Positions 6,001-48,027 of a stretch of DNA of 64,000 nucleotides are shown one piece after another. The stretch covers positions 124,001-188,000 of IMG/VR virus record IMGVR_UViG_3300046517_002304; one strand, given 5' to 3'. The position numbers were made by a program, and so were the translations under genes. Numbering within the stretch: position 1 is the stretch's first letter; each line of letters starts with the position of its first letter. Under the pieces are notes generated by a model. That model did no database searches and had not been told where the DNA came from. It was given only the letters and a program-made list of their open reading frames with translations.

Positions 6001-9000
6001 TTCTGTGGCGATATGACCAACGCCTGCTGAAGCATTTTGCGATGCTGTGCATGTAAAGTGAGTAATTGATCCGGTCACAGATCTCATGAAGGTACTGCAT
6101 GCTACCGCACAAGAGGCAGTATGAGATACTTTAGAATTAGATGCAAGATTTACTGATGCTACAACTATTGCTTGTTCAGAATGGGAAATTTTGCTTGAAG
6201 CACTAATCAGTGAATTACAAAGTATGTTGATGCTATCTTTGTTTAAATTTCTACCCAAACCAGCTATGCTTGAATTACAAGATAGATGATTTATAGATTC
6301 AACGTGCGCCACTTTAGCGCTAGGGTTAATATTAGAGGTACATGATGTTAAACAAGTCGCTACATGAGCCACTTTAGATGAAGAGTTAAATAATGTTTGG
6401 CATATTACGCCACATATATCTTTGTGCACGATGCCAGAATTACTGCCGATACTTGAAGTACAATTTAGATTATTCGTAGATTCAACATGAGTGGTTTTAG
6501 CGCTAGCTATAATACTTGAGTTACATGACGTTAGGCAAGTGCCTACGTGTGCTACTCTGGCGTTAGCTATAATACTTGAGTTACATAATGCCAAGCAAGT
6601 ACCTGCGTGCACTACTTTAGTGCTAGCTATAATACTTGAGCTACATAATGCTAAGCAAGTACCTACGTGCACTACTTTAGCATTGGCGGTAATATTAGAC
6701 GCACAAGTTAAGTTATTCGTAGACTCAACATGGACGACCTTGGCACTAGGATTAATATTAGAAGTGCATGATGCTAAGTAAGTGCCTACATGCGCTACTT
6801 TTGTATTGCTAACTGTTGAACTACTAGTATTTGCGATTAGTGTTGTGGCAACGTGGGCGACTTGAATATTGGTAACAATTAATATGCCGCTATTTGCCGA
6901 TATGAATATGGATTTATGAGCCACTCGGCAATTAGCGGAAACTGAAGACGAGCATATAATGTCACTATTGCCTGTAGTGGTTCCATGTACTGATGCGTTA
7001 ATATTAGAAGTACAAGTTAAGTGATTCACAGACTCAACATGCGCCACTTTGGCGCTAGCTATGATACTTGAATTACACGATATTAAGCAAGTACCTACAT
7101 GAGCAACTTTAGTACTGGCTATAATATTAGAGTTACATGATGCTAGGCAGGTACCTACATGCGCGACTCTAGAACTAGCTGTAATATTAGAACCGCATAA
7201 TACACCGACCACGCCTACATGTGCTACTCTGGCACTAGCTATAATGCTTGATGCACAAGCTAAGATACTAGTAATCTCAATATGCGTCACATTAGCATTG
7301 CCGCCAATACTTGAGCTACAAGTTATATGATTCGTAGATTCAACATGTGCAACTTTAGAATTAGCTATAATACTTGAGCTACATGACGCTAGGCAAGTGC
7401 CTACGTGTGCTATTCTGGCGTTAGCTATAATACTTGAGCTACATGATACTAAACAAGTGCCTACATGGGCAACTTTGGCGTTAGCTATAATATTAGAACC
7501 GCATAATACGCCAACTGTTCCTACATGCGCAACCCTAGAGCTAGCCACAATGCCTGAACTACAATTTAGGTTATTTGTAGACTCAATATGCGCTACTTTA
7601 GAATTAGGGATAATACTTGAAGAGCATGACAACAAGCAGGTGCCTACGTGTGCTACTTTAGCATTGGCTATAATATTAGAGCTACATGATACTACAGAAG
7701 TAGCGCCCAAAACAGCTCTTATGTTACATACACAAGATATGTTAGTAGTCGCAATATGAGCAACCTTAGCACTACCGCTGATACTTGAAGTACAATTTAG
7801 GCTATTCGTAGATTCAACGTGTGCTACTTTAGAATTAGCCGTAATGTTTGAACTACATGATATGTTGATGGCTCCTATATGAGCAGCCTTAACGCTGGCA
7901 GTAATATTAGAACTGCATGACAATAAGCAGGCGCCTACGTGTGCTACTTTGGCATTGGCTATAATATTAGAGCCGCACAATACCCCAACTGTTCCTACAT
8001 GCGCAACCTTAGCACTAGCTAGAATACTTGAAGTATTCAATATTAAACAGGTGCCTACATGTGTAACTTTGGCACTACCGCTGATACTTGAAGTACAATT
8101 TAGGCTATTCGTAGATTCAACGTGTGCTACTTTAGAATTAGCCGTAATGTTTGAGCTACATGATACTAAACAAGTGCCTACGTGTGCAACTTTAGCATTA
8201 GCTATAATATTAGAAGTACATGATATTAAGCAAGTCCCTACATGTGCAACCTTAGCACTAGCTATAATGTTAGAACTGCATGATACTAAACAAGTGCCTA
8301 CGTGTGCAACTTTAGCATTAGCTATAATATTAGAAGTACATGATATTAAGCAAGTCCCTACATGTGCAACCTTAGCACTGGCGGTAATATTAGACGCACA
8401 AGTTAAGTTATTCGTAGACTCAACATGGACGACCTTAGCGCTGGCAATAATACTTGAATTACAAACTATATGATTTACAGATTCAACATGGTCAACTCTG
8501 GCGCTGGCTATAATGTTTGAGCTACATGATATTAAGCAAGTCCCTACATGTGCAACCTTAGCATTAGCCGTAATATTAGAAGTGCAAGTTAAATGATTTG
8601 TAGATTCAACGTGCGCTACTTTAACATTAGCTATAATATTAGAAGTACAAACTATAGAGCAAACTGAATTACGGGTAATTTTCCCTGTTGCCACTATTGC
8701 GGAAGAACAAATAATTGCACATGTGTCTAAGTGAGCAACTTTTGCATTTGGACTAATATTACTAGTACACGTTATTACCCATGTACTTGGTGAGTTAACC
8801 GTGCTAAAGTTTATGTATTTGTTAGATCTGTTTAGTAATCCAGGATATGAAGTAATGCTATTTTGGTAAAGTAAACTTGCTTCGCCTCTAGACAAGGCTC
8901 GGTTATAAACTCTAATATCATCCATATAACCAGTTAAGCCTTGAACTGATTGGTTATATGATCCTATGACCAATGGCGATGTTATATCGTCAAAGTGTGT

Positions 9001-23758: not shown

Positions 23759-24739
23759 ATGAATGAAATCAAATTATTCGGAATGCCTGGGACGATCCCT
23801 TTTGCGGAAAAAGTCGCCGCACAACTGGATTTATCGCTAGGCAGATACACCTACAAGCTTTTTGACGACAAAGAGCCGTACATTCGGTCTGACGAGAATG
23901 TACGGAATATGGATGTTTATATCATTAGCTCTCTTTGTTTTACTAAAGATTTTACTCCGTCAGAAAAATTCATGCAGTTATTGATGTTTATCGGTTCATT
24001 GAGGGATGCCTCCGCCGGCAAGATAAACGTGGTCGTGCCGTTTATGGCCTTTTCAAGGATGGATAGGAAAACACAGCCGAGAGAACCAATCGCCACAAAG
24101 TATGTCGCCCAACTCTTAGAATCTGTAGGCACAAATCGTATTATCTGCTGTGATATTCACAACTTAAGTTCTTTCCAGTGCAGTTTTCGTATTAATACAG
24201 ACAATCTAGAAGCCAAAAATTTATTTGCTAAACACGTAGCTGCAACAATAAAAAACCACAAAAACATTGCTGTTCTTAGCCCTGATTCAGGCGGAATGTC
24301 AAGAGCGTCTAGATTCCGTAATGCACTGAACAATATTTTAAAGGAAAATGTTGGACTTGCTTATTTAGATAAAAGTAGAAGTCAGGCGGGTGACGTAAGC
24401 GGAAATCATATCGTTGGTGATGTTAAAGACAAGCAAGTAGTGATTATTGACGACATGATTTCAAGCGGCAAAACAATTAAGCAGTGTGTTGATACAGTCA
24501 AATCACACGGCGGTACAGTTTGGGCAATTTGCGCCACTCATGGTTTATTTGTTGGAAAAGTTAATGATTATCTTGCTGGCGTAAATAAGATAATCATTAC
24601 TGATACGATAAATCATTTTGATGATTTAGATAAAAGTATACTTGAGAAAATTGAAATTGTGTCAACTACGGAAATGTTCGCCAAAGCTATTCGCAGAACG
24701 AATCAGGGCGGTTCTATTAGTTCTTTATTAAAAGACTAA
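23759..24739 (+). CDS. prs: ribose-phosphate pyrophosphokinase (PRPP synthetase)
   Basis: F.DKE, ENVRNMDV, SRMDRK, DIH, SPDSGG, IIDDMISSGKT, ATHGLF, TDTI. Confidence 0.92.
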   Translation: MNEIKLFGMPGTIPFAEKVAAQLDLSLGRYTYKLFDDKEPYIRSDENVRNMDVYIISSLCFTKDFTPSEKFMQLLMFIGSLRDASAGKINVVVPFMAFSRMDRKTQPREPIATKYVAQLLESVGTNRIICCDIHNLSSFQCSFRINTDNLEAKNLFAKHVAATIKNHKNIAVLSPDSGGMSRASRFRNALNNILKENVGLAYLDKSRSQAGDVSGNHIVGDVKDKQVVIIDDMISSGKTIKQCVDTVKSHGGTVWAICATHGLFVGKVNDYLAGVNKIIITDTINHFDDLDKSILEKIEIVSTTEMFAKAIRRTNQGGSISSLLKD

Positions 24740-27313: not shown

Positions 27314-27937
27314 TTAGGATTTATTACTATTTTCTAGTTCGGTGTTCCAGTAAAGTTCAGACAGGAATGCATCCCATGACTTCGGCATAACTCTACGATC
27401 AATGTTAAATATACTAAATTTTGGTTTAAATGGTTGTCTAATAAGCTTCATCCCGATTTCATCAGGCGTATTGTTGGCCTTGTACCTATTGCATTTGGTG
27501 CAAGCGATTACGCAATTAAACCAATTAGTTTTTCCATTTCTTGATACCGGTATAATGTGATCTATAGACAGCTCTTTGGTCCCAGGTGTAGCCCCACAAT
27601 ATTGACATTGATTGTTATCTCTGTTGTAGATAGCTCTACGATTAAACGGCACCTGTCTATTGGGAAAGCCATCGTATCTGGTTAAGAGTATGACCTCTGG
27701 AATTCTATATGCGGTACTTCTAGTTTTAATAACACTTTCATTATCGTTAGGACGAATTTGCGACCAATCATTCCATGTATAGGTGGAAAAACCGTTAATC
27801 GCGTCAACTATTCTTGCTTTTGGCTCATTGTTCTTATAGGTGCTGAACAGCTTGGAAATAGCCGACTCTAGAGGATTAATGCCAATAGGCATCCATGACT
27901 TATTGAGAACTAAAACCGGATGAGCGGCGACATACAT
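27314..27937 (-). CDS. HNH endonuclease (McrA-like)
   Basis: VLVLNKSW, PEVI, RD...CQYCG, SIDHIIPVSRNG...W.NCV.AC..CN..K. Confidence 0.9.
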   Translation of the reverse strand: MYVAAHPVLVLNKSWMPIGINPLESAISKLFSTYKNNEPKARIVDAINGFSTYTWNDWSQIRPNDNESVIKTRSTAYRIPEVILLTRYDGFPNRQVPFNRRAIYNRDNNQCQYCGATPGTKELSIDHIIPVSRNGKTNWFNCVIACTKCNRYKANNTPDEIGMKLIRQPFKPKFSIFNIDRRVMPKSWDAFLSELYWNTELENSNKS

Positions 27938-28233: not shown

Positions 28234-28509
28234 CTATGTTAACTCATCGCCATAATAGCCCGCGGGAATTTCAGTCCATTTCATTCCTGACACCGGCACA
28301 TCTTTTGCCTTCTTCTTATTCTTTGCTTTCTTAGCAGTTATTTTTTTCACTGGCGCGAAATCAAAGGCAGACAACGGCTTTAATCCCACGAATGCTTTTC
28401 TTGGATCGTTTCGGTTACGAAAGCATTTGTCGCATATGTCATAGTTACACGCAACATCTTCAACGGTATTTGCGTTTGACATAGGTTGTCCACAGTAATC
28501 GCACTTCAT
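28234..28509 (-). CDS. zinc-ribbon protein
   Basis: MKCDYCG...ICDKC; N-terminus shared with 29483-29728. Confidence 0.6.
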   Translation of the reverse strand: MKCDYCGQPMSNANTVEDVACNYDICDKCFRNRNDPRKAFVGLKPLSAFDFAPVKKITAKKAKNKKKAKDVPVSGMKWTEIPAGYYGDELT

Positions 28510-28727
28510 GATCGCTCCTTTATTTCTGCTAATCTTTGTTTTCTATGAGGCTCTAGATGTCTTTCGTGCCAGCTTTTGTCTCTCTGGCTGCTAAGGTCAA
28601 TCCAATGTTGAAAATTTTCTGGCTCTACCGGCTCCTCTCCATCGGCAAATTCCACAAAATCAGGCACACATTCTCCCCCTTTAATGTTTGGGTAATACTT
28701 AAGTTTTATATAATACTTCAATTTCAT
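28506..28727 (-). CDS. hypothetical protein
   Basis: 73 aa. Confidence 0.5.
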   Translation of the reverse strand: MKLKYYIKLKYYPNIKGGECVPDFVEFADGEEPVEPENFQHWIDLSSQRDKSWHERHLEPHRKQRLAEIKERS

Positions 28728-28729
28728 TT

Positions 28730-29467
28730 TTAGCTCCTGAGTTTATTAAAAATTGATTCGCTTAATCGTTCTTTTAACTCTAGGTTCATAGACGGAATCT
28801 CGCCGCCCACAAAGCAAGAGTATAAATAACACAAATTATCCATACCGTTTTTATCGGTGGTTGCCTTCTTTAACTTTAAACTAATTTCTTCATAACTGTC
28901 GTCTAAAAACAAACAACCGCCTGGATTTGATTTTGACATTTTAACAGATGGATTTTTTAAATCCTTAATTCTTCCCACTACAATCTCTGGTTCAGGTATA
29001 ACAAAATCTTCGCTGAAAACTCTGTTATATTTTTTTAGTAGCTTAGATGCATACTGAAGATGCTGTGTTTGATCTTCCCCAACAAGTACTTTTTTAAATC
29101 CTGCTACGTCGTGCGTCATCAAAACTGGATACGTTAATAAATGGGCGCTTGGATTAGACGACGACTTGTATTGTGTCATTCTTTCTAAATCGCCCATTGC
29201 GGATATTGAAAGAAGTTTGAAGTAAAATTCGGCATTAAAAACATCCTTTTGAATTATGATTTTAGAAACGCCAAATTTGTTCAGTAGCTCAATGCTATTC
29301 TTGATTTCCTGCCCAGGCGCATGATAGTTAGCAACTAAAACGCTAGCTCCAGCTTTTCCTGGCAGTATTACCGAGAAATAGTGACCAAGATGCAATTTGC
29401 CTGTTGGCCTGAACCCGCACAATTTATCACCAAAGACACACCATGTTTCTTCTCCTGAAAACCCCAT
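28730..29467 (-). CDS. trpS: compact tryptophanyl-tRNA synthetase (true start may be ATG 29444 via +1 frameshift)
   Basis: GFRPTGKLHLGH (HIGH), LERMTQYK, LLTYPVLMTHD, VGEDQTQH, KMSKS. Confidence 0.88.
   Translation of the reverse strand: MGFSGEETWCVFGDKLCGFRPTGKLHLGHYFSVILPGKAGASVLVANYHAPGQEIKNSIELLNKFGVSKIIIQKDVFNAEFYFKLLSISAMGDLERMTQYKSSSNPSAHLLTYPVLMTHDVAGFKKVLVGEDQTQHLQYASKLLKKYNRVFSEDFVIPEPEIVVGRIKDLKNPSVKMSKSNPGGCLFLDDSYEEISLKLKKATTDKNGMDNLCYLYSCFVGGEIPSMNLELKERLSESIFNKLRS
29427..29456 (-). promoter_or_regulatory. SD + 5-codon ORF (MVCLW*) with candidate +1 frameshift site CUU-UGG
   Basis: AGGAG-N7-ATG GTG TGT CTT TGG TGA; +1 slip at CTT.T joins the trpS frame (GGT GAT AAA TTG). Confidence 0.55.
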
Positions 29468-29493
29468 TTTACACTAAAAACTTTACTTGTCAA
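29466..29493 (-). promoter_or_regulatory. sigma70-like promoter for trpS
   Basis: TTGACA (29493-29488)-N16-TAAAAT (29471-29466). Confidence 0.55.
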
Positions 29494-29728
29494 GGCCCTT
29501 AGATGCAGAATAGCGACAGCGCAAGTAGTAAATCAATCCCGTTGGACCAAGTAATGGCTGCACACTTACAAGCTTATTGGCTATGGATGCCGTATTTAAA
29601 TTTTTAAATAGGGGAATAGACATATGAGAAAACATGTTAATATTTTTCCCGCTACACTTTGCGCATACCTGATGTTCATTTAATGGAACCAGTTTATCGG
29701 ATTTATTTCCACAGTAATCGCATATCAT
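29483..29728 (-). CDS. zinc ribbon fused to a major-capsid-protein segment
   Basis: MICDYCG..CAKC followed by 42 aa with 27 identities to MCP residues 71-112. Confidence 0.8.
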   Translation of the reverse strand: MICDYCGNKSDKLVPLNEHQVCAKCSGKNINMFSHMSIPLFKNLNTASIANKLVSVQPLLGPTGLIYYLRCRYSASKGLDK

Positions 29729-29770: not shown

Positions 29771-31204
29771 ATGCGATTTCGTGCCTACCTAGAGTCGTTC
29801 GGCTCGTTTAATTATAGGGTTCCCAATGACCCAGAAGAGCAATTATACGACTTCTATATGCTTAATTGGCTTAGGGGCAGAAATTCGCTTTATAACAAAG
29901 CTAATCAACATGGGTTGGCTATCTCACCTAAAAAGCCAGAATATGGCGGTGACATGGGCCATGAAGACAAAATAGATTATATGTTAGATGAAGTCGCACA
30001 TACTCTAATCCCCAAGCTTAAATCCGACTTCCTTAAGGCAGTGCTATTCGGCATTACTGCGGAAATGCGGCATGTGCCTCGTGAAATGGGAGATTATAAA
30101 AATTTTTCGGCTAATATAGCAGACGGCGTCGGCGAGAGATACGCAAAAATATACAATGATTTTTTTAGTTATTATAATTATGATAATTTTAAAGACAAAA
30201 TGGCAGAATTTAATAAATCTGTTCCTGTAAAAGACAGAATGTTTAGAAATGTTAAAAATTTCGTAGATCCGCATAATGCCGATTTTCTTCATTATAATAT
30301 GACCGGTAGAATGGCCGCTTATCGCAGTATGTTAAAAGGCGGCTCTACTGAGAGAGATTTCGTAGAAATGGCTAAATTTACGTTTGCGAACGGTAGTTGG
30401 CAGGCTAGCTATGGTGGCCAACCATGGGCAAATGCTTGTGATGGATGGCTGCAATTATATGATTCAAAAGGTGAAAATTCTGATATAGTCGCCATTGATC
30501 ACATTTATGATCTACAGCATAATAATGGTTCTGTTTTAAATAAAGTAGCTAAGTATATTAAGGGGGGAAATACTACATGGCTCAAAACTGCTTTGGATGA
30601 TAAGGCGCAGTCTAATGGTCCGATGGATATAGTGGATAAAGTATCGTCAAGCATGAGAGAACTAGCTTTGCCGGCCATAAAATTAAAATTTGGAACAACG
30701 TATCAAGACAAGGCATCTGCGGAAATTTCACCATATAAAGGCTCTTATGAAAACCAATATTTTTTGACTGGCCATGACTGGAGTGCCTACGAAGGAGCTT
30801 ATCATAGTTCTTCAATTCCTGAATTAAAGTTAGTGCGACTTGGGCTATATCTTGGTTGGTCGCCTAAAAAGGTTACATTAAAGGATATTGAAAGGTTAAA
30901 AAATACTTTAAAAGTTCCTCAGTTAGATGACGCGCGGATAAAGAAAGTGCTTACATCTGAATACAATAATAAAAGAAACATAGAAACTGGTAACTTTAAA
31001 TATGTAAAGGTTAAATTAAGTAGTGATTTAATACGGGAAATAGACAAATTTATAAGGCTAAAAGACACCTGGCTATATGAAGCAGTAGTTAAAAAAATAG
31101 ACAGTGAAACTCATTATGGATATGCAGCATCAAAATACTTATATGGCTACTGCGCATCATTAGTCGGTAAACAAAGAAGTATAGATGAGGTCGTAGAGCC
31201 ATGA
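29771..31204 (+). CDS. putative internal head protein, paralog 1
   Basis: 477 aa; MRFRAYLES; YGGQPW..ACD.W, IDHIYDLQHNNG; TAAATA 4 nt upstream. Confidence 0.7.
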   Translation: MRFRAYLESFGSFNYRVPNDPEEQLYDFYMLNWLRGRNSLYNKANQHGLAISPKKPEYGGDMGHEDKIDYMLDEVAHTLIPKLKSDFLKAVLFGITAEMRHVPREMGDYKNFSANIADGVGERYAKIYNDFFSYYNYDNFKDKMAEFNKSVPVKDRMFRNVKNFVDPHNADFLHYNMTGRMAAYRSMLKGGSTERDFVEMAKFTFANGSWQASYGGQPWANACDGWLQLYDSKGENSDIVAIDHIYDLQHNNGSVLNKVAKYIKGGNTTWLKTALDDKAQSNGPMDIVDKVSSSMRELALPAIKLKFGTTYQDKASAEISPYKGSYENQYFLTGHDWSAYEGAYHSSSIPELKLVRLGLYLGWSPKKVTLKDIERLKNTLKVPQLDDARIKKVLTSEYNNKRNIETGNFKYVKVKLSSDLIREIDKFIRLKDTWLYEAVVKKIDSETHYGYAASKYLYGYCASLVGKQRSIDEVVEP

Positions 31205-32607
31205 GATTCTCTCAATTTATAGAATCTTTTGGTTCATTTAATTATCGTGTTCCCGATGATCCAGAAGAACAATTATATGACTTCTATATGTTGAATTTGC
31301 TAAGAGGCAGAAATTCGCTTTATAACAAGGCTAATCAACATGGCTTAACCATAATGCCTAAGAAGCCAGAGTACGGCGGCGAAATGAATCATGAAGATAA
31401 AGTAGACTACATGCTGGATGAAGTGGCAAAAGTTCTTATACCAAAACTTAAATCAGATTTATTAGAAGCGGTTCTTTTTAGTATAACGGCAGAATTTAGA
31501 CATGGTGGCGACCGAGATACGCAAGAAATACCAATGAGCCATATGACAGATATGATTCGTAGACAAATGGGCGCTAAATATTCTAGAATATTTAGCGATT
31601 TTTTTAACCATTTAGACTCTTCTTTTGATGCATCGTTTAGGCCAAAAATTCAAGCAAATTCTCAATTGATGAAAAACACTATTAACAGTACTCCTATCTA
31701 TAACAGTAGAAGATTGGCATCTTATTCATCGATGGAAAAAAGTACCCATAATGAAAAAGACTTTGTAGAAATGGCTAAATTTGTTTTTGGGGAGGGGGAT
31801 TGGGACAAAGATTACGGTGGTCCTTCATGGGAACAGGCTTGTGATGCATGGCTCCAACTGTATAATTCTAAATCAGAAGATTCAGACATTATAGCGATTG
31901 ATCATATGTACGATATAGAGCACAATACAGGGAACATTCTTGACAAGAGCAATCACTTTTTAAAGAACGGGCAATTTACATGGCTCAGTAATGCCCTTAA
32001 TAAAAAAGCTAGAATTACTTCTCCGATGCAAATCATTGACGATATTTCTCCAGCAATGACACAAATAGCCTTGCCTGCCATAAAGTTAAAGTATGGCCAA
32101 ACATTAGAAGATAAAATGAAGGCTGATACATTTAAAACACAGATCCCAGGAGCTGGGTTTGATGACTTAATTAAAAAGGAATTTGACGAAAATCAAGGAA
32201 TATATGATGCAGGTATTCCTGAACTAAAAATGGCTAGAACTCTTAGGGGAATTTTAGCTGCTTATAAAGTGCGTAGAATTGACTTTAGAATCATTGAATT
32301 AGCTAAGTCTAAAATTAGAGTCCCATTAGACAGTCAAAAAATTAAACAGTTCTTTCAGCAAGAGTATCAAAATTGCAGAAATATAGAAACTGGTAACTTT
32401 GGTCATGTTAAGGTGCTTATGACTAAAGATTTAATATACGAAATACAAAAAAATTTAGAAGATCCATATGGCCATAGATCAGGAATAAAAGACAGAATAG
32501 CCGGTGAAACAAATTATGACGATGAAGTTATTAAGAGTTTAGTAGATTACTGTGAAAAGTTAGTTGAAGATGGCGGAAATGTTAGCTCAATATTAGCGGT
32601 TCGCTAA
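31201..32607 (+). CDS. putative internal head protein, paralog 2
   Basis: 468 aa; MRFSQFIES; first ~100 aa very similar to paralog 1. Confidence 0.7.
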   Translation: MRFSQFIESFGSFNYRVPDDPEEQLYDFYMLNLLRGRNSLYNKANQHGLTIMPKKPEYGGEMNHEDKVDYMLDEVAKVLIPKLKSDLLEAVLFSITAEFRHGGDRDTQEIPMSHMTDMIRRQMGAKYSRIFSDFFNHLDSSFDASFRPKIQANSQLMKNTINSTPIYNSRRLASYSSMEKSTHNEKDFVEMAKFVFGEGDWDKDYGGPSWEQACDAWLQLYNSKSEDSDIIAIDHMYDIEHNTGNILDKSNHFLKNGQFTWLSNALNKKARITSPMQIIDDISPAMTQIALPAIKLKYGQTLEDKMKADTFKTQIPGAGFDDLIKKEFDENQGIYDAGIPELKMARTLRGILAAYKVRRIDFRIIELAKSKIRVPLDSQKIKQFFQQEYQNCRNIETGNFGHVKVLMTKDLIYEIQKNLEDPYGHRSGIKDRIAGETNYDDEVIKSLVDYCEKLVEDGGNVSSILAVR

Positions 32608-33137
32608 GCTTCATTACCCCAGCAATACCAGCCTTCTCTTTTAGCTCTAGCATACATGTCTAATCGTGGTTCTGGCGATAGCTTTTCTACTAGCTTATAG
32701 AAATCATCTGGTTTCTCGCTATGCCTGCCTCTATCCCATGAAAAGCATGTTCCACTAGTAGCCTGTGAATGCCGTCCACCCATTCCAAAAGGATTTCCGT
32801 GTCTACTTCCTACCCGAGACACAAGTATATGTTCTGTATTACATCTAAAACGTCCTACGCCAAGCCCTGGCTTCTTCCAAGTCCAAAGTATGATTGGTTT
32901 AGCCTTCCATGCGCCAGCGACCGTATAGGCCCAATCTACGTGTTGTGCAAGGCACCATATGTATAAGTGTGCCTGTTTGGCAATCGGCGGCTTGATAGAA
33001 CAGATTTCGTCTAAGCTTAATGTGTTATAATGAGATTGTGGACTGCCCTTGGGCGCTTTTCCATTAATAATTGACATTTCTGGTGTCCAAGGCGGGTCAA
33101 CCACTATTGTGCGAAACTCTACATCAGGAAATTGCAT
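32604..33137 (-). CDS. MT-A70 family adenine methyltransferase
   Basis: IVVDPPW, LYIW, W.KPGLGVG..R.NTEH, HSEKP, MYAR..REGW..WGNE. Confidence 0.9.
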   Translation of the reverse strand: MQFPDVEFRTIVVDPPWTPEMSIINGKAPKGSPQSHYNTLSLDEICSIKPPIAKQAHLYIWCLAQHVDWAYTVAGAWKAKPIILWTWKKPGLGVGRFRCNTEHILVSRVGSRHGNPFGMGGRHSQATSGTCFSWDRGRHSEKPDDFYKLVEKLSPEPRLDMYARAKREGWYCWGNEA

Positions 33138-34583: not shown

Positions 34584-34946
34584 ATGAAGGAAGTTAAATC
34601 AGTAGAAGAAATAAAGTGTACCGACGACTTCAATAAGGAAGTGATTGTCAGCAAGCAATGTCTGCACACTGGTGTGATTTATTACTTTCTTAAAGGTGCT
34701 TGGACACCAGTTTATCCGCAAGAGGATGGCACATTCAGGTATCCATATAATTGCAATACAGTTATGCAGATAATGACATTGACGCCTGTAGTGGAGCGAA
34801 AGTCTTTGGTTGAAAGGCTCAGGGATCAGTCTAATAGTCCATCTTGGATTGTAAGACTTAGTAGTCGTCTTATGATTTTTAAATTGAAATGCGAATCTTT
34901 ATTAGATTCAGAAAAACCTTGGGTTGAAAGGTGGTTGGGGGAATGA
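34584..34946 (+). CDS. hypothetical protein
   Basis: 120 aa, SD AAGGA. Confidence 0.55.
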   Translation: MKEVKSVEEIKCTDDFNKEVIVSKQCLHTGVIYYFLKGAWTPVYPQEDGTFRYPYNCNTVMQIMTLTPVVERKSLVERLRDQSNSPSWIVRLSSRLMIFKLKCESLLDSEKPWVERWLGE

Positions 34947-35134
34947 TTGTAATTAGTGCTGAGTATAAGGAAATACCTATTAGCCAACCTATGGCTGAAT
35001 TTAAAAGAATTAGCATTCCTTTGATAAGAAGGATTTATCCTAGTTTAATTGACATGAGAAGTGATCTTTTCAGTATTAGAGGAGATTATGTTATTAGAAC
35101 GATAGATAGCGCTTATGAACATGGCTATGATTGA
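34943..35134 (+). CDS. small protein carrying major-capsid residues 65-83
   Basis: AEFKRISIPLIRRIYPSLI vs MCP ANFKRISIPLVRRIFPQLI (15/19); ATGA coupling with the upstream gene. Confidence 0.75.
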   Translation: MIVISAEYKEIPISQPMAEFKRISIPLIRRIYPSLIDMRSDLFSIRGDYVIRTIDSAYEHGYD

Positions 35135-35768: not shown

Positions 35769-37616
35769 ATGGGAAAAGAACGAGTAAGAACAACGATAGA
35801 ATATATTGCCAAGGCCAAAAATAAATGGAATGGATATTTTACATATCCGAATACTATTTTTATTGGCCGGTTTGGCAAAATTGAATTTGAGTGTCCAGTA
35901 CATGGCGCTATGACAATGACGGCTAGAGCACATCTAGATTCTGGTTGTAACAAATGTAATGGATATTTTAAGCACACTGGGGCAACGGCAAAAGCCAAAA
36001 TGCTCCAAATACATGGGTATTTTTGCGACTATTCTAAAATACCCGATGAATTAGAATTCGGAGTCAATACTATTGTAGAAATAGGTTGCCCTAAACATGG
36101 ATTCTTTAAAATCAAAATTGAAGACCATTTTAATGCGGTGCATCCATGCCGTAGCTGTGCCAATGAAGCTAGGGGAATTGCTAATAAAAAAACAACAGAA
36201 GAATGGATATCTGAAGCAAAACTTAAATGGGGCCAAACGTGTAATTATGACAAATCGGTTTATGTAAATAAAGAAACCTATATTGATATTTATTGTATTT
36301 ATCATGGGTGGATAAAACAGAAACCGAATAATCATGTAGAAAATGGATGCCATCATTGTAGCGGCCGTGGTATTGGCAAGCATGACAGATATAGCTTTAT
36401 TAAAAGGGCGATACAAATTAATGGATATATTTATGATTACTCTAAAGTATTAGATAATTTTAGTGGATTAAACTCTGTTATAGAACTAGGATGTCCAACG
36501 CATGGGTGGTTTAAAGTTGTAGCGGCTAATCATCTTACAGAAGGACGAGGATGCTCAAAATGTAATGGTGGTGTTTTTTATACACATAATGACTTCTTAG
36601 AAAAGGCAAATAAAAAGCATAATAATAAATTCAAATATCTATCAAAATATACTAGATCACATGATCCAATTACGATAGAGTGCTCTAAGCACGGTGTATT
36701 TGAACAGTTGGCCTATGTCCATCTTCAGTCAATCCATGCTTGCCAGAAGTGTGCTGCTGAATTAGGGCAATCCGCTGGCGAAAACGAGGTAGCGGATTAT
36801 ATCGCCAATTTAGGCATTAATATTATTAGAAATGACAATACTTTTCTTGGGAAGTCAAAAGAAATAGATATTTACTTACCCGATCAAAAGGTTGGAATTG
36901 AATATTGTGGCCTTTATTACCATAGGGAAGGCATGCAGACATATAAATTTAACCATAATATTAAAACTAATTTAGCAGATGAAAAAAATATATTTTTAAT
37001 TCATTTGTTTGACAAGGAATGGAAAGAGCAAAAAGAAATTGTTAAATCTAGGATATCTGGCATATTGGGGAAAAATAAGACGATATATGCTAAAAACACA
37101 GAGATAGTTCAATTACATAAATACGAAAAAGATAAATTTTTACAGGAAACGCATATACAAGGAAAAGATAATTCCAGTATTTATTTCGGCTTAAAATATA
37201 AGGATCAGATTGTTTCATGCATGACATTTGGGCACCCAAGATTTAATAAAAACTATAACTGGGAAATGCTTAGGTTTAGTTCTATTTTGTATACCCATAT
37301 AGTGGGCGGAGCTAGCAAGCTGTTGTCTCACTTTAGAAAAATTTATCCAGGAACAATTATTTCTTACGCTGACAGGAGATGGTCACAAGGAAAGTTGTAT
37401 TACATATTAGGATTTAACTTAGATAAAGTTACAGAGCCTAGTTATCATTATTATAATGTTTCTACACATGCATTTCATAATCGTCTAAAATTTCAAAAGT
37501 ATAAGCTTAAAGATATGCCTTATTATGATGAAAAATTAACCGAAGAAGAAATTATGATGTTAAATGGATATGATAGAGTTTGGGATGCAGGACAAATGCG
37601 GTTTGTTCTTAAGTAA
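35769..37616 (+). CDS. Hef-like/DUF723-repeat homing endonuclease
   Basis: Repeated YDYSK..CP.HG.F...H...CxxC modules; EIDIYLP..GIEYCG.YYH nuclease; C-terminal GGASKLL..ISYADRRWS domain. Confidence 0.8.
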   Translation: MGKERVRTTIEYIAKAKNKWNGYFTYPNTIFIGRFGKIEFECPVHGAMTMTARAHLDSGCNKCNGYFKHTGATAKAKMLQIHGYFCDYSKIPDELEFGVNTIVEIGCPKHGFFKIKIEDHFNAVHPCRSCANEARGIANKKTTEEWISEAKLKWGQTCNYDKSVYVNKETYIDIYCIYHGWIKQKPNNHVENGCHHCSGRGIGKHDRYSFIKRAIQINGYIYDYSKVLDNFSGLNSVIELGCPTHGWFKVVAANHLTEGRGCSKCNGGVFYTHNDFLEKANKKHNNKFKYLSKYTRSHDPITIECSKHGVFEQLAYVHLQSIHACQKCAAELGQSAGENEVADYIANLGINIIRNDNTFLGKSKEIDIYLPDQKVGIEYCGLYYHREGMQTYKFNHNIKTNLADEKNIFLIHLFDKEWKEQKEIVKSRISGILGKNKTIYAKNTEIVQLHKYEKDKFLQETHIQGKDNSSIYFGLKYKDQIVSCMTFGHPRFNKNYNWEMLRFSSILYTHIVGGASKLLSHFRKIYPGTIISYADRRWSQGKLYYILGFNLDKVTEPSYHYYNVSTHAFHNRLKFQKYKLKDMPYYDEKLTEEEIMMLNGYDRVWDAGQMRFVLK

Positions 37617-37683: not shown

Positions 37684-39135
37684 TTAGATGCTGAAATTGT
37701 TGATAGCGATGGTAGCGTAGAAGCGTGCACCGTTATTTAGTAATTTAAGTCCGTATCTTGTCATCAAGCCTCTACGTGGGCAGAAGCTATTAGGGTCAAG
37801 TACCAGTGGAGTCTGCATTAAAGGAACGTATGGGCAATAGAAGAACCCTGAATCCATATAAGTATCACCCTTATAACCCATGAGTAGGTTATTGGTTGGG
37901 AACTGTGGATCCTTATAAAGCTTCCAACGGTTGCTGACAGTACCGACATACTGAACGCCTAGCGAGCTAGTGAACGATTCTGAAGGTGCTGGAGCGAAAC
38001 CTGCTGTGGCTGTCTCAAAGATTGAGGCAACTTCAGGTGAGCAGATAATCCAGTTTGCACCGCTACGTAGCGTTTTCTTATGGATGATGTTGCTAACCTG
38101 TGAAACCTTAACGAATAGGGCTTCGTACTTTTCCTTAACGGTATCACCTAGGGCAGTGTTGTAATCCCAAGTGACGTTAGTACCAGCGTTGTTACGGAGG
38201 TTGGTGATGATTTCACGGTCAATTTCAAGATTGATTTCTTGAGCAAGAACGGTCGTCAATTCCTGTTCCGCATCTAGCGAATACTGTGAACGTAAGTCCT
38301 GTTGAGCTTCAAAGCTCCAGACAGCGCGTAGCTTACGGGTAACGGCGGTAATGGTTTCCTGTTCAACCGTTAGATTAACTTCGGGCTGATCAGTATTGCA
38401 TTCCATGTTATAGTCGTAAGTGACGACGATGCTGTTAGTGCTAGGATCGCTTGACCAAGTTAGAGTGATGGCACCAGTCGTGAGATTGATGCTACCAGCG
38501 GTAACGTTTGGTGAATTGCTCGTAGAACTAATAGTAAAGGTACCCGACGCATCAATGGTGAAGGTCTGAATGGCAGTGCTACCCTGGTAGATAGTACCTG
38601 ATTCAGTTCCAGCAAGAATTGGCGTGTGCTTTAGAGTGTAAGTAAGAGTAGTTGTACCACCAGCGTTGGTGACGGTTTCAAGACTGACAGTCTGGCTAGA
38701 ATAGAAAATATCAAGATTTACTAGACCGCTTGAGAGCTGTTGTAGTGAAAGAGCATCGTCTGTTGGGAAACTAGACTTGTTAGTCGCACCTAGTGTAGCA
38801 CCCTTGTCAGTCGCATAGCGAAAGCGGAGGTAATAAACTAGACCGACTGGACCGAGTAATGGCTGAACAGAAACGATCTTGTTAGCGATTAGCTGTGGGA
38901 AAATACGACGAACGAGGGGGATACTAATACGTTTGAAGTTAGCGACATCGCCTGCGGTCGTGCTTGAAGATTCGTTGAGGTTGCATGATAGTTCCTGATT
39001 TTCCATTAGGATGGCAGTGTTCTGACGAACTGTCTTATCCTTAATGTCGTTCAGGAGACCACGGTCGCCCCAAGTTTTTTCGCACTTGGCACCTTCGTGT
39101 AAAAATTCCCCTTTGGCTGTACCAAAATTTGACAT
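37684..39135 (-). CDS. gp23: major capsid protein, T4 gp23 family
   Basis: ENQE, VRR..P.LIA...VQP..GP.G, RKLRAVWSFEAQQDL, EINLEIDREI, FYCPYVPL, F.P..GLMTRYG; probable cleavage at LNE55. Confidence 0.96.
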   Translation of the reverse strand: MSNFGTAKGEFLHEGAKCEKTWGDRGLLNDIKDKTVRQNTAILMENQELSCNLNESSSTTAGDVANFKRISIPLVRRIFPQLIANKIVSVQPLLGPVGLVYYLRFRYATDKGATLGATNKSSFPTDDALSLQQLSSGLVNLDIFYSSQTVSLETVTNAGGTTTLTYTLKHTPILAGTESGTIYQGSTAIQTFTIDASGTFTISSTSNSPNVTAGSINLTTGAITLTWSSDPSTNSIVVTYDYNMECNTDQPEVNLTVEQETITAVTRKLRAVWSFEAQQDLRSQYSLDAEQELTTVLAQEINLEIDREIITNLRNNAGTNVTWDYNTALGDTVKEKYEALFVKVSQVSNIIHKKTLRSGANWIICSPEVASIFETATAGFAPAPSESFTSSLGVQYVGTVSNRWKLYKDPQFPTNNLLMGYKGDTYMDSGFFYCPYVPLMQTPLVLDPNSFCPRRGLMTRYGLKLLNNGARFYATIAINNFSI

Positions 39136-39223: not shown

Positions 39224-40135
39224 CTATTTATTATCGTAAGCGAGTTTGCGCCATTGAGCTTCAATAGAAGTTGTATCTTCATCAATTCTGGTTGGTTCTT
39301 CTGTCGCTACCGCTTCTTTAAGAACGACAACTTCTTGTCGGCTCTTATCGTTAACAACAACGCCCTTACCCTCTACTGTCTTCTTCTTTTCGCTTCTTAC
39401 CTTTTCAGTGCCTTCGGAAATAACCTGTGCTGAGGCACGAACTTGTTCATTTAGCTTATCGCGTTCCGCTGTTAGGCGGTTAGCTCTGGCTTCTAATACC
39501 TTGACCTGTTGCTTGGCTTCAGTTACCTGACGGCCTAGCTCTTCGGCTTTGCTAGCTGTTACGCTGGCGTAATCTTCGTCGCTGAGCCAATCAGATGCTA
39601 GATTGAGAACTTTGTCCCAAGCTAGTTTGTGCTCAAGCATGTATGGGTCATTAAGAATCTGTGCTTTGGCCATTTCGTGTAGCTCTTCTTCCTTGACGCT
39701 TAGGAACTGGTCAATCTTGTCAACTAGGTCAGTCTTAACTGCGTGTAGTTCACGTTCTTTGGCTTCGTTGATGGTTAGCTCAAGCTCTTCGTTCTTCTTG
39801 CGTTCGGCAAGAATTAGATCTTTGGCTTGTTCATGAGCCTCTTCTAGCTGTACTTCAAACTCTTCGCGCTGTGTTTCAAGACGATTCTTGAAGTCAACGA
39901 TAATTTCATAAGCTTCGTTATATCCCTTTAGGGCAACCTTCTCAGCTTCAAGCTTCTCAGCTTCAACTGTCTTATAGGCTGATTCAAGATTAGCATTATA
40001 TTCGGTTTCTAGTTCAGCTCTCGCTCCGTCTAGGAATTCGCTGACAGCTTCAGTAAGCTTGGCGCGATCACCTTCTGGTACTAGGGCTTCTAGAGCCTGG
40101 AAAACTTTGCTTTTTGCGTCTGTATTCTTAGTCAT
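39224..40135 (-). CDS. prohead scaffold/core protein (gp22-like)
   Basis: Acidic coiled-coil protein between protease and MCP. Confidence 0.8.
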   Translation of the reverse strand: MTKNTDAKSKVFQALEALVPEGDRAKLTEAVSEFLDGARAELETEYNANLESAYKTVEAEKLEAEKVALKGYNEAYEIIVDFKNRLETQREEFEVQLEEAHEQAKDLILAERKKNEELELTINEAKERELHAVKTDLVDKIDQFLSVKEEELHEMAKAQILNDPYMLEHKLAWDKVLNLASDWLSDEDYASVTASKAEELGRQVTEAKQQVKVLEARANRLTAERDKLNEQVRASAQVISEGTEKVRSEKKKTVEGKGVVVNDKSRQEVVVLKEAVATEEPTRIDEDTTSIEAQWRKLAYDNK

Positions 40136-40814
40136 TGTTTAGGTTCTCTCTAATTAATTGTGATTCCTTGTTAATCATATGTCCCATAAAGGAAATTAAA
40201 GTATTAACATTTACTTTATTTAGGGATGCTGTCTCATTTTTTATTTGTATATTCTCTGAATTAATGGTTGAAACTGACTCAACTTTACGTGCAATAGCAC
40301 GAATTTCAGATGGGTTGTTGACAATATCAAAGGTTACTAGGTTATAATTGTCGTTGATTTCAAGAACTCCGTCTGCATTAGTAGTTCCCGAACCTACACC
40401 TCTTGTGCTCACACCAACCGTAATATTTGATTCTAGTAAAGCCTTAAGAACCTTACCGTTTGGAGTATTTAGAACTTCAGCATTGCCCCAAAGTTCATTC
40501 CCCTCCCACCATAGCTTGGTTACAACCGCGCAAGCTGTTTCAAGCTTAACTACACTTGTATCTGGATGGTCAAGACTAGAGATTAAAGCTCTCTGATCTA
40601 TGAATTTCTGTAGACGATTTACATTCTGTTCTAGAATTGATTTCTTATACTTACGCTTATTCTGATTAACGGTCTCGGCGACACTAAAAATGCCTGTAAA
40701 GACGGTTGGTCCACCCTTGTGGGACTCATTTAAATTCAGTGTGGCATAGCCGCCGTTGTCTAGAAGGAGATAATCGCTCATATGTTTTTGATCTTTACAA
40801 AAAGGGTCTGACAT
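40128..40814 (-). CDS. gp21: prohead protease, T4 gp21 family (start possibly 40781)
   Basis: NQNKRKY, LDHP, LNTPNG, GVSTRGVGS, TFDIVNNPS. Confidence 0.92.
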   Translation of the reverse strand: MSDPFCKDQKHMSDYLLLDNGGYATLNLNESHKGGPTVFTGIFSVAETVNQNKRKYKKSILEQNVNRLQKFIDQRALISSLDHPDTSVVKLETACAVVTKLWWEGNELWGNAEVLNTPNGKVLKALLESNITVGVSTRGVGSGTTNADGVLEINDNYNLVTFDIVNNPSEIRAIARKVESVSTINSENIQIKNETASLNKVNVNTLISFMGHMINKESQLIRENLNND

Positions 40815-42724: not shown

Positions 42725-44044
42725 GTGCCTAAAAAACTTACTACTGAACAGTTCGTTGAAAAAGCTATAAAAGTGCATGGGGAGCGGTACGATTATAGTT
42801 TGGTGGAGTATATTAGCAATAAGGTGATGGTGCAGATAATTTGTCCATTACACGGTATTTTTGAACAAAGACCCGATGGACATTTATCTAGCATTGTTGG
42901 CGGGTGTCCCGAATGTGGGCGGATACAAGTCATACAAACCAAAAAAGACCATGGCTTAAGTCATACCGTAGAATATCAAACGTGGCATAGAATGATGAGC
43001 AGATGTTATAATAAAAACCATCATCATTATTTGGACTATGGAGCACGAGGTATTATGGTTTGTGAAAGGTGGCATGATTTTTTAAACTTTTTAGAAGACA
43101 TGGGACTAAGACCAGTAAATTTATCTTTAGATAGGATTGATTGTAATGGCAATTATTGTCCTGAAAATTGTAGATGGTCAAGCAATAAAGAACAACTTAA
43201 TAATAGAAGAAATGTTAAAAAATATACCGTTAATGGCATGACCAAAACGCTTACTGGATGGTGTGAAGAAACTGGATTATCTTATAAATGTTTAAGTAAT
43301 AGGTTTCGCAACGGGTGGAGCATTGAAGATGCTATTAATACGCCTAAAATTACCTATAACAAGAAGGATGGCAATGAAGTTAAAAAGAAAAAATCTTCAT
43401 CTAAAGAGGTAATAATTATTAAAGAAAAAACACTTGAAGATTTTAAAAATAAATGTAATTTTAAAGATATATCTGGCAAAAAAATCGGCACTTTGACTGC
43501 GATTAAGCCGCTTGGAATTAATTGCTACGGACAAGTGGTATGGCTTTTTACATGTGAGTGCGGAGATAAAATTAATTATATATGCAGAGGCCGCCTATGC
43601 GAAAGATGTAATTCACCAAGGTTTGCCAAGATTACTAATCCCAAAGAGTATGGCACATGGTGTCGTATGATTGAGAGATGTAAAAATGACATAGATTATA
43701 TTAATAAAAACGTTACTGTTTGTCCAAGATGGCTAGATGGTTTTGATAACTTTCTTGCCGACATGGGGATGTCGCCTCATTATAAATGTAGTCTAGATAG
43801 AATTAATAATAACTTAGGTTATTACAAAGGAAATTGTAGGTGGGCTACCGATGAGCAGCAACAAAGAAATAAAAGCGATACTATCATGCTTACAGTTAAT
43901 GGCGAAACCAAACCGCTTGTTGAATGGTGTGAAATTACGGGAATGTCCAGATCTTGCCTAAGGTCAAGAATTCAATCCGGCTGGTCTGTAGAAGATGCTG
44001 TACTAACTCCTTTTCGTAAAATTAAAAGAAAAAACCCTGTATAA
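42725..44044 (+). CDS. homing endonuclease: DUF723-like + two HNH modules
   Basis: VHGERYDYS..CPLHG; SLDRIDCNGNYCPENCRW and SLDRINNNLGYYKGNCRW. Confidence 0.85.
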   Translation: MPKKLTTEQFVEKAIKVHGERYDYSLVEYISNKVMVQIICPLHGIFEQRPDGHLSSIVGGCPECGRIQVIQTKKDHGLSHTVEYQTWHRMMSRCYNKNHHHYLDYGARGIMVCERWHDFLNFLEDMGLRPVNLSLDRIDCNGNYCPENCRWSSNKEQLNNRRNVKKYTVNGMTKTLTGWCEETGLSYKCLSNRFRNGWSIEDAINTPKITYNKKDGNEVKKKKSSSKEVIIIKEKTLEDFKNKCNFKDISGKKIGTLTAIKPLGINCYGQVVWLFTCECGDKINYICRGRLCERCNSPRFAKITNPKEYGTWCRMIERCKNDIDYINKNVTVCPRWLDGFDNFLADMGMSPHYKCSLDRINNNLGYYKGNCRWATDEQQQRNKSDTIMLTVNGETKPLVEWCEITGMSRSCLRSRIQSGWSVEDAVLTPFRKIKRKNPV

Positions 44045-46132: not shown

Positions 46133-46297
46133 ATGAGCAATTATTGGATTGATTTGATAAAAAGAGAAGAAGAATTAGAAAAATTACGCAAAGAACAAGA
46201 ACGCCGCGATTTTGAGATAATTTATCAAGAACTTCAAATGCGAGAAAAGCTAAAGGCCCTTTGGAACTCACAAAGGAAACAAGGCCAGAAAGTTTAG
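46133..46297 (+). CDS. 54-aa coiled-coil protein (not in ORF track)
   Basis: MSNYWIDLIKREEELEKLRKEQERR...; TATATA 5 nt upstream; stops 2 nt before the terminase ATG. Confidence 0.55.
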   Translation: MSNYWIDLIKREEELEKLRKEQERRDFEIIYQELQMREKLKALWNSQRKQGQKV

Positions 46298-46299
46298 TA

Positions 46300-48027
46300 A
46301 TGGGTGGGATAGACTACGCCGCTGAATATAAAAAGTGCGCAAAAGACTTTGTTTACTTTTGTGAAACCTATGTTAAAATTCGGCATAGCACTAAAGGCAA
46401 GGTGCCTTTTAAGCTATATGATTACCAAAAGCGCACTCTTGAAGATTTTGAAAATCATAGGTACAACATAGTATTAAAATTTAGACAGGGCGGTTTAACT
46501 ACGCTTGCCGTTATATGGGCCGCTTGGAAGGCAATGTTTAACACAAAGCAGAATCAAATCTCTTTCGTGTCTAGAACTGATCGCGAAGCAAAAATTTCTG
46601 CTCGTATCGTTACATTTTTTCTTCATGAGTTGCCGGATTGGTTAAAACCAGAAATGGAAGCGCGTCCAGCAGCACATGAAAAGAAATTCATGGAAACTGG
46701 TGGATCTATAATATTTTCTACTGTTAAGGCGGTTCGCGGTCGTTCATTGGCATTATTAATTATAGACGAAGCGGCATTCATTTCAGATATGGAAGAAAAC
46801 TGGGCTGACTTACAGCCTGCTCTTTCTGGTGGCGGTAGATGCATTGTAATTTCTACGCCTAAGGGAAAAGGTAATTGGTATGCTGTTGAATATCATAAGG
46901 CTCTTAACAATGAAAATCAGTTTCATGTAATTGATATTGACGTATCAGAACATCCAGATTACAATAACCCAAAGTGGATAGCAGAACAAAAATCTGCTCT
47001 AGGAGAAAAAAGATTCGGTCAAGAAGTTTTACGCCAATTCTTGGCTCCAGGCGAAACATTTCTTTCCAATAGTTTAATTAATGACTTAGATCTTGCCACT
47101 AGGGGAACGCCACCGATGGCTAGAAGATTTCCGCTGTGGGACACGACCACTAGAGATGGGGAAAAAGGCGCTTTATGGATATGGAAAGCGCCTGTTGAAG
47201 GCAAAGATTATATTATTGCTGCGGATAGCGGTGAAGGCGTAGGCGAAGAGGGAGACTTTAGTGCCTTCCAAGTTTTTGACGTTGCGGAATGTGAACAAGT
47301 TGCTGAATTTTATAGCAACTCTATTCCACCATATACGTATGCCCAAATCCTTAGTCAGATTGCTACATCTTATAATTACGCAAATTTAGTGGTTGAAGGC
47401 AACGGTCCTGGTATTGCTACGCTGGCTGAATTAACAAGCAAATTATTTTATACACATCTATATGGAAAAAGAGTTAGAGACGGTTTTAAGCCAGGATATT
47501 TAACAGGTGGCACAAATAGAGTCGCAATGTTTGATACGCTCCAAGCAGCGCTTATGAATAAAACAGTTGTGTTAAAAAGCACAAGATTGATCAAAGAGTT
47601 CAATACATTTATTTTTAATGCATCTAAGAAACGTCCTGAAGCCGCAAAGGGAACTCATGATGATTTAATCATGGCCTTAGCGATTGCGCTGCAAGTGCGC
47701 AGTGAGTTATATGCTAACATAGCTAGGTATACTCCATCAGCCGAACATATTAAGGATATTGCTCCGAATGCCTTATCTATAAGCGCAATCAAAGCAGAGT
47801 TAGAAACTTTATTTAGCTCAAGCTACCCATCTTACAAAGATGGACCTCCGCCAATTATAGATCCAAATGAAGAAATATTTGGTAAAGATATAAATGAAGC
47901 AATGTTTAAACAACATCAGGCCGCGCGCTTTGGAAATGATGTCTTAAAAGAATTTGGATGGGCCGTTTTGCCGTTTATTTTTACTGCTTGTGAAGTATTA
48001 ACAAATTCGGTTAGTGGACTAGCCTAG
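46300..48027 (+). CDS. terL: terminase large subunit, T4 gp17 family
   Basis: YF...YVKI..F.LYDYQ, KFRQGGLTT, LLIIDEAAF, ISTP.G, IIAADSGEG..DFS, HDDLIMA; start revised to ATG 46300. Confidence 0.93.
   Translation: MGGIDYAAEYKKCAKDFVYFCETYVKIRHSTKGKVPFKLYDYQKRTLEDFENHRYNIVLKFRQGGLTTLAVIWAAWKAMFNTKQNQISFVSRTDREAKISARIVTFFLHELPDWLKPEMEARPAAHEKKFMETGGSIIFSTVKAVRGRSLALLIIDEAAFISDMEENWADLQPALSGGGRCIVISTPKGKGNWYAVEYHKALNNENQFHVIDIDVSEHPDYNNPKWIAEQKSALGEKRFGQEVLRQFLAPGETFLSNSLINDLDLATRGTPPMARRFPLWDTTTRDGEKGALWIWKAPVEGKDYIIAADSGEGVGEEGDFSAFQVFDVAECEQVAEFYSNSIPPYTYAQILSQIATSYNYANLVVEGNGPGIATLAELTSKLFYTHLYGKRVRDGFKPGYLTGGTNRVAMFDTLQAALMNKTVVLKSTRLIKEFNTFIFNASKKRPEAAKGTHDDLIMALAIALQVRSELYANIARYTPSAEHIKDIAPNALSISAIKAELETLFSSSYPSYKDGPPPIIDPNEEIFGKDINEAMFKQHQAARFGNDVLKEFGWAVLPFIFTACEVLTNSVSGLA

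Follow-up and report, generated by a model that had tools for sequence, protein, structure and literature searches.

[quoted passage not shown] Gol is described as a 29-residue region with a 20-residue core, which binds EF-Tu domains II/III as a free peptide, makes the bound EF-Tu cleavable by Lit, and is the most conserved part of gp23 (PMC3014915). It lies at about residues 93-122 of gp23. The binding has been known for decades, yet the only role assigned to it is the accidental one of triggering the Lit suicide protease. The gp23 N-terminus also directs fusion proteins to GroEL (Snyder & Tarkowski 2005, as cited in PMC3012670), and gp23* residues 66-105 are flexible and interior in the prohead, where they probably touch the scaffold core before becoming the external N-arm/N-fist, with capsid-length mutations mapping there (PMC9546572). 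Other short peptides with a targeting role include the capsid-targeting sequences (CTS) of T4 internal proteins and the cargo-loading peptides of encapsulins, while small phage proteins such as DSAD1, acting against DSR2 (PMC11087589), blunt sensors of structural proteins.

Here we describe a small gene of a huge phage that carries a copy of this capsid segment. The window analysed is a 64,000-nt stretch (positions 124,001 to 188,000) of the 511-kb IMG/VR virus record IMGVR_UViG_3300046517_002304, for which the nearest GenBank genome is the 595-kb uncultured phage LR756511.1 (61% MCP identity). It contains a T4-like head module consisting of an S77 prohead protease (T4 gp21 type, 40128-40814), a scaffold-like gene (39224-40135), the MCP and a large terminase (46261-48027). 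The features discussed below are as follows.

29483..29728 (-), 81-aa mini-protein (mini81; ATG start, TAA stop), a putative zinc knuckle plus an MCP N-arm/Gol-region segment
29654..29722 (-), mini81 residues 3-25, CxxC-x15-CxxC, a putative zinc knuckle pair
29585..29620 (-), mini81 residues 37-48, degenerated first part of the segment (A-part; SIPL kept, VRRIYPQL replaced by FKNLNTAS)
29495..29584 (-), mini81 residues 49-78, conserved second part of the segment (B-part; IANK..VSVQPLLGPTGLIYYLR.RY..KG), equivalent to about T4 gp23 107-136
37684..39135 (-), MCP of the T4 gp23 type, 483 aa
38800..38925 (-), MCP residues 71-112, the source-type segment, equal to T4 gp23 95-136
34943..35134 (+), second mini-protein, 63 aa, with the A-part only (FKRISIPLIRRIYPSLI, 35000-35050) plus a tag-like end (RTIDSAYE, 35096-35119)
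28730..29467 (-), TrpRS-like class I aminoacyl-tRNA synthetase core, 245 aa, 15 nt downstream of mini81
28506..28727 (-), 73-aa ORF between the TrpRS-like gene and the 91-aa ORF, with overlapping stop/start codons and no family hit
28234..28509 (-), 91-aa ORF with the same N-terminal M.CDYCG...CxxC start as mini81, then a polybasic C-terminal part, in the same operon-like run of genes
27314..27937 (-), HNH endonuclease, orthologue of the HNH gene that follows mini-PTH2 in other huge phages
31169..31201 (+), C-terminus (..KQRSIDEVVEP) of the 477-aa protein encoded divergently from mini81, carrying the RSID[DE] tag motif

Residues 37-78 of mini81 align without gaps to residues 71-112 of the window's own MCP, with 27/42 identical, and BLASTP extends the match to 31/63 with E 5e-18. 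The 483-aa ORF is identified as a T4-type MCP by Pfam Gp23 (E 2.8e-86) and by matches to T4 gp23 PDB chains (E about 3e-31), and the HMMER alignment to full-length T4 gp23 is ungapped across this region, placing window MCP 54-113 opposite T4 78-137. mini81 itself reaches 33.9 bits against Gp23, above the curated cut-off of 24.4, but matches only model positions 4-47 of 376, and positions 53-104 of 444 in phrog_138. It is therefore a fragment-derived protein and not a capsid protein, since T4-type MCPs (about 400-520 aa) cover the whole HK97 fold (P and A domains, E-loop and spine helix). Fifteen of the 27 identical residues use different codons, nucleotide identity is 59%, and Nei-Gojobori analysis gives pN 0.30 and pS 0.72. 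The VRRIFPQL block of the MCP is fully replaced in mini81 (0/8 identical).

The observation made in the earlier note from the sequence alone is thus confirmed. The note had reported the match to the phage's own capsid protein, its equivalence to the T4 Gol region, the use of different codons as a sign of selection on the peptide, the replaced VRRIFPQL block and the position directly upstream of trpS, and each of these descriptive statements holds. The "zinc ribbon" of the note remains a motif-level call, as all zinc-ribbon Pfam hits are below their cut-offs (DUF4428 19 bits vs 27.8; Zn_ribbon_8 14.6 vs 34.4) and AF2 is not confident there (pLDDT 54-58 over residues 1-30). The only other ORF in the 64 kb that begins M.CDYCG and has a second CxxC is the 91-aa gene two positions downstream (Pfam ZZ 20.3 bits, just under the cut-off), suggesting that the putative zinc-knuckle start was acquired locally. 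The trpS of the note is TrpRS-like (Pfam tRNA-synt_1b E 1e-28, with HLGH and KMSKS motifs), but it scores below the trpS equivalog cut-off (TIGR00233, 92 vs 176.75 bits) and matches only model positions 80-223 of 328, so that it is probably a catalytic core without the usual C-terminal anticodon-binding part.

Recent duplication or gene conversion from the phage's own MCP was rejected, because nucleotide identity is low, synonymous sites are saturated, and mini81 is no closer to its own MCP (27/45) than to the MCPs of other phages (29/45). A split or interrupted MCP gene was also rejected, since the MCP is intact and aligns to T4 gp23 across the whole fold. Divergence of mini81 from the family/MCP consensus is sharply uneven, with 4/15 residues kept in the A-part (consensus KRISIPLVRRIYPQL) and 25/30 in the B-part (IANKIVSVQPLLGPTGLVYYLR.RY..KG), that is, 11/15 against 5/30 changed, a pattern that neutral decay would not give.

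A word-indexed search restricted to short proteins first found four stand-alone relatives without a zinc knuckle. A profile built from these found 211 short hits, and an exhaustive profile search of 1.84 billion cluster representatives found 217 hits at E<=1e-10. A rough sorting of the 244 retrieved sequences gave 12 full-length MCPs, about 60 truncated MCP N-termini, 65 minis with a C-terminal polybasic run followed by [WY]R[SD]I[DT][DE]PWE, 18 minis ending ..DWKKEGF, 37 other minis of 110 aa or less, and several dozen proteins in which the segment is N- or C-terminal to unrelated sequence. Part of the signal is therefore artefactual, as three of the truncated sequences (P0002, P0003 and P0044; P numbers denote retrieved proteins) are MCP N-termini that read through into an Illumina adapter (..IGRAHV) and inflate the count of short Gp23 hits. 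The minis on long contigs are complete genes, many on contigs of 345-673 kb, and at least 120 short proteins remain, of which 83 of about 120 have one of the two tags. The ESM Atlas independently holds several clusters of 63-74-aa viral "Gp23 domain-containing" proteins. The typical member is 70-100 aa, comprising the segment, a polybasic linker and the C-terminal tag. mini81, which ends ..SKGLDK, has neither the linker nor a tag.

Over 45 residues the consensus of the minis equals the MCP consensus except at one position (H for F), and typical members keep the VRRIYP block almost unchanged. The minis are more variable than the MCP segment but keep the residues shared with T4. Between minis of different phages, as for mini81 against its own MCP, pS is saturated at 0.56-1.1 while pN is 0.11-0.33. 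A tree of the 45-aa segment, built to ask whether the minis form one clade and where mini81 falls, gave no resolution (best split support 0.64). No autonomous fold was predicted by AF2 for mini81 (pLDDT 63.6, pTM 0.23) or for a typical mini (65.7, 0.24). Megablast of the region against GenBank phages gave nothing, and tblastn of 50,697 GenBank phage records with mini81 and with a typical mini hit only MCP genes, one place per record, including LR756511.1. PHROGs and NCBIfam have no dedicated family for the minis, cluster members carry only the name "hypothetical protein", and no mention was found in the papers searched.

The segment also occurs in other architectures. In P0188, P0217, P0219, P0222, P0241, P0244, P0171, P0174, P0193 and P0215 it is fused N- or C-terminally to unidentified domains of ~90 aa, and in P0224 a domain of about 115 aa is inserted in the loop between ..VQPMTG and ..LVYYLRYRY, suggesting that the two flanking pieces pair with each other. 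A Pfam search of the partner domains gave no identity apart from one weak Phage_VG64 hit. A few segment-bearing proteins start with Tat-signal-like (RR.FLK leaders; P0099, P0100, P0155, P0212) or transmembrane-like hydrophobic sequences (P0111, P0132, P0141, P0149), which is odd for a cytoplasmic ligand; the context of P0099 (locus L025) looks phage-like. A second conserved ending (..[VI][DN]W[KR][KT]EGF) defines another subfamily (P0101, P0111, P0113, P0118, P0128, P0131, P0132, P0138, P0143 and others), one member of which (locus L026) lies 4 kb from its phage's MCP among SIR2, ClpP, Peptidase_C92 and Metallophos genes.

In seven contigs with tail-type minis the gene order is mini, then none or one small tagged ORF or a second mini, then the peptidyl-tRNA hydrolase PTH2, then a tagged TM plus coiled-coil protein of ~160 aa, and then HNH. 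The outer flanks differ, some having MetRS-, GluRS-, ArgRS- or HisRS-like genes and RF-1, and others Metallophos, OGFr_N or Macro. The window's HNH (Pfam HNH) is 42-51% identical to the HNH genes of loci L016, L019, L020, L022, L023 and L024 and lies 1.5 kb downstream of mini81, which therefore occupies the family's position. PTH2 and the ~160-aa gene are missing from the window, being replaced by the TrpRS-like gene and two small ORFs. Adjacency to PTH2 is constant in this one lineage of related phages, but the contexts of other subfamilies (L021, L025, L026 and the P0219 contig) show no translation genes next to the mini, and the PTH2 link may therefore be lineage-specific, inherited synteny. 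A promoter and terminator scan performed no better than on shuffled sequence.

The second small gene of the window (34943-35134) starts within the stop of the upstream 120-aa ORF (ATGA), to which it is translationally coupled, and matches the minis of 7 loci by tblastn (E 3e-7 to 4e-5). It lacks the B-part, and has the same architecture as the 58-aa mini of L016; this A-only plus tag form sits in tandem with a full mini in L016 and L022. In this phage the two halves of the segment are therefore on two proteins, about 5 kb apart.

The motif [basic]..[WFY]R[SD]ID[DE](PWE) ends many unrelated proteins around the minis, in L016, L019, L020 and L022-L024 (4-5 in each of L016 and L019, and 3 in L020), as well as the 477-aa protein of the window. 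Its codons vary and it hardly occurs away from C-termini, indicating a protein-level C-terminal signal, which could serve in docking, sorting or protease recognition. The 477-aa protein (29771-31204) and its tandem paralogue of 468 aa (31201-32607, +) share 47% identity and have no informative family hit (one weak PHROG of unknown function), and only the first ends with the RSIDE motif. The window further contains a 2580-aa ORF (3085-10827, -), an MT-A70 methyltransferase (32604-33137, -), a PRPP synthetase (23759-24739, +) and two DUF723/zinc-ribbon-rich proteins flanking the head module (35769-37616 and 42725-44044, +).

It is well supported that mini81 is a real, selected gene, a divergent member and the positional orthologue of a large, apparently undescribed family of stand-alone proteins built around an old copy of the MCP N-terminal arm, the stretch just after the maturation cleavage site. 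The fold family (Gp23) and the peptide (Gol) are already known, and what is apparently undescribed is the segment as free-standing genes with their own tags and fusions. In this phage the family member lost the tag and the A-part, kept the B-part, and acquired the putative zinc-knuckle N-terminus. The analysis itself shows the homology to the MCP N-arm/Gol region, purifying selection on the segment, its portability across protein architectures, the conserved genomic position and the lack of a predicted autonomous fold, whereas a role of the minis as trans-acting ligands of EF-Tu or another of the partners known from T4 is inferred, and any activation or blocking of Lit or another sensor by them is hypothetical. 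Selection refers here to the segment and not to the fusion, as the exact architecture of mini81 was found in one genome only.

Since the segment is not predicted to fold on its own, and the minis conserve the residues conserved in MCPs from this clade to T4, we read it as a portable peptide ligand that would engage, in trans, whatever partner the MCP N-arm engages before it is locked into the capsid. The only biochemical activities shown for this stretch of T4 gp23 are binding to EF-Tu and directing fusion proteins to GroEL, the former being the only activity demonstrated for the isolated peptide. Together with the tRNA/translation neighbours (PTH2 or TrpRS-like next door; aaRS and RF-1 nearby), this makes EF-Tu, or the translation-folding hand-off, our leading candidate, with the zinc knuckle or the tag as a possible second contact. 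We give this reading a probability of roughly 0.4 including the identity of the gene, and about 0.3 for the partner itself, which is inferred from a distant relative (about 30% MCP identity) without binding data of any kind. mini81 lacks the VRR..P..L residues that lie inside the T4 Gol stretch, so that EF-Tu binding in the T4 manner is doubtful for this particular protein, and it may bind more weakly, differently, or together with the A-only protein. The PTH2 adjacency is seen only in one subfamily of related phages and could be inherited synteny, and the variants with TM- or Tat-like leaders fit a cytoplasmic EF-Tu ligand poorly.

Less likely is a role in capsid assembly or head targeting, in which the N-arm copy would bind the scaffold core, the prohead protease or neighbouring MCP subunits, as the MCP's own arm does inside the prohead, so that minis would be recruited into proheads or would regulate assembly or maturation, with the shared tag as a head-targeting or protease-recognition peptide. 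This is suggested by the interior location in T4 of the equivalent of the A-part (gp23* 66-105, PMC9546572), by the retention in some minis of the piece of propeptide around the predicted cleavage site (LLENQRLMNE), by the S77 protease and scaffold-like gene next to the MCP, by the presence in many tags of I-x-E, the T4 protease motif, by the location of the second mini 2.5 kb from the head module, and by the resemblance of one tag shared by unrelated proteins to cargo-loading peptides. However, the tail-type minis are never adjacent to head genes but sit beside PTH2/HNH, many tags have D rather than E at the would-be P1 position, typical minis carry no cargo domain, and mini81 has lost both the A-part and the tag.

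The earlier note proposed a non-activating Gol decoy on a small scaffold, and its interpretation is only partly supported: the homology and the selection on the peptide stand, while no evidence obtained here supports the decoy itself, which we consider improbable but not excluded. In this reading the fragment would mimic the MCP epitope read by a host sensor (Lit-like with EF-Tu, CapRel-like or Avs7-like) and occupy it without activating it. MCPs are bona fide immune triggers, EF-Tu is part of two MCP-sensing systems (Lit/Gol, PMC3014915; Avs7, preprint 10.64898/2026.01.04.697583), the replaced block of mini81 could uncouple binding from activation, and the greater variability of minis than of the MCP segment might be expected in an arms race. 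The note had named non-conservation of the segment in orthologues as a ground for refutation, and this did not occur, the segment being conserved in well over 100 stand-alone relatives. However, loss of the VRRIYP block is a peculiarity of this one ORF and not the family's design, and because the isolated T4 peptide with EF-Tu suffices to make EF-Tu a Lit substrate (PMC3014915), faithful copies would be expected to trigger such a sensor and not to blunt it. In addition, the minis do not co-vary with their own genome's MCP, the neighbourhood consists of tRNA/translation enzymes and an HNH gene without recognisable anti-defence genes, conservation is deep with saturated synonymous sites and does not show rapid turnover, and no MCP-fragment decoy was found in the literature searched.

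Least likely is that mini81 is a decaying or neutral chimera, which lost its tag and A-part after PTH2 was replaced, was fused by accident to a neighbouring zinc-knuckle start and has no function of its own, since despite its unique architecture, the loss of two of the family's three conserved elements and the absence of the canonical neighbours, its reading frame is intact, its divergence is strongly uneven, its spacing to the downstream genes is tight and operon-like, and its pN/pS is far below 1 against every relative.

The maintenance of this stretch by selection as a free-standing gene in many huge phages, with a conserved place next to tRNA/translation enzymes, means that it has a function separable from building a capsid, for which the minis provide natural minimal constructs. 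It also bears on immune sensors that read capsid proteins (Lit, CapRel and Avs7, the last of which incorporates EF-Tu), for which such fragments could act as triggers, decoys or neither, while the shared tags point to an unrecognised sorting or docking signal in these phages. A broader hypothesis, doubtful on present evidence, is that the Gol/N-arm stretch is an ancient, portable interaction module that huge phages have copied out of the MCP gene many times and use, alone or fused to tags and unrelated domains, to hook proteins onto EF-Tu or the EF-Tu-to-chaperonin hand-off. The mini-PTH2 block would then be a phage translation-control unit, giving a physiological meaning to the unexplained EF-Tu binding of gp23 and supplying natural stand-alone ligands with which to study it.

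Among the described systems, phage proteins such as DSAD1 (PMC11087589) represent the class proposed in the earlier note, a small phage protein acting on a pathway that reads a virion protein, although these examples are not known to be fragments of the sensed structural protein, and for the minis such a sensor is hypothetical. The T4 CTS and the encapsulin cargo-loading peptides resemble the RSID[DE]PWE tag in being short terminal peptides shared by otherwise unrelated proteins, and a shell-protein-related interaction is possible, but the T4 CTS is N-terminal and unrelated in sequence, packaging of the tagged proteins would be inferred by analogy only, and mini81 itself has no tag. The GroEL-directing N-terminus of gp23 (PMC3012670) is a portable function of the same general region of the MCP, to which the natural fusions of the segment to unrelated domains may be compared, although most minis carry no cargo domain. 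In T4 the Gol stretch exists only as part of the MCP, with no natural stand-alone gene described, and mini81 has FKN..T.SIA..L..VQP in place of the conserved core VRR..P.LIA..I..VQP, which typical family members keep. Nevertheless, mini81 occupies the position homologous to Gol, and window MCP 71-112 and mini81 37-78 align ungapped to T4 gp23 95-136 and share the pan-T4-like residues IA..I..VQP...PTG.V..LR..Y.
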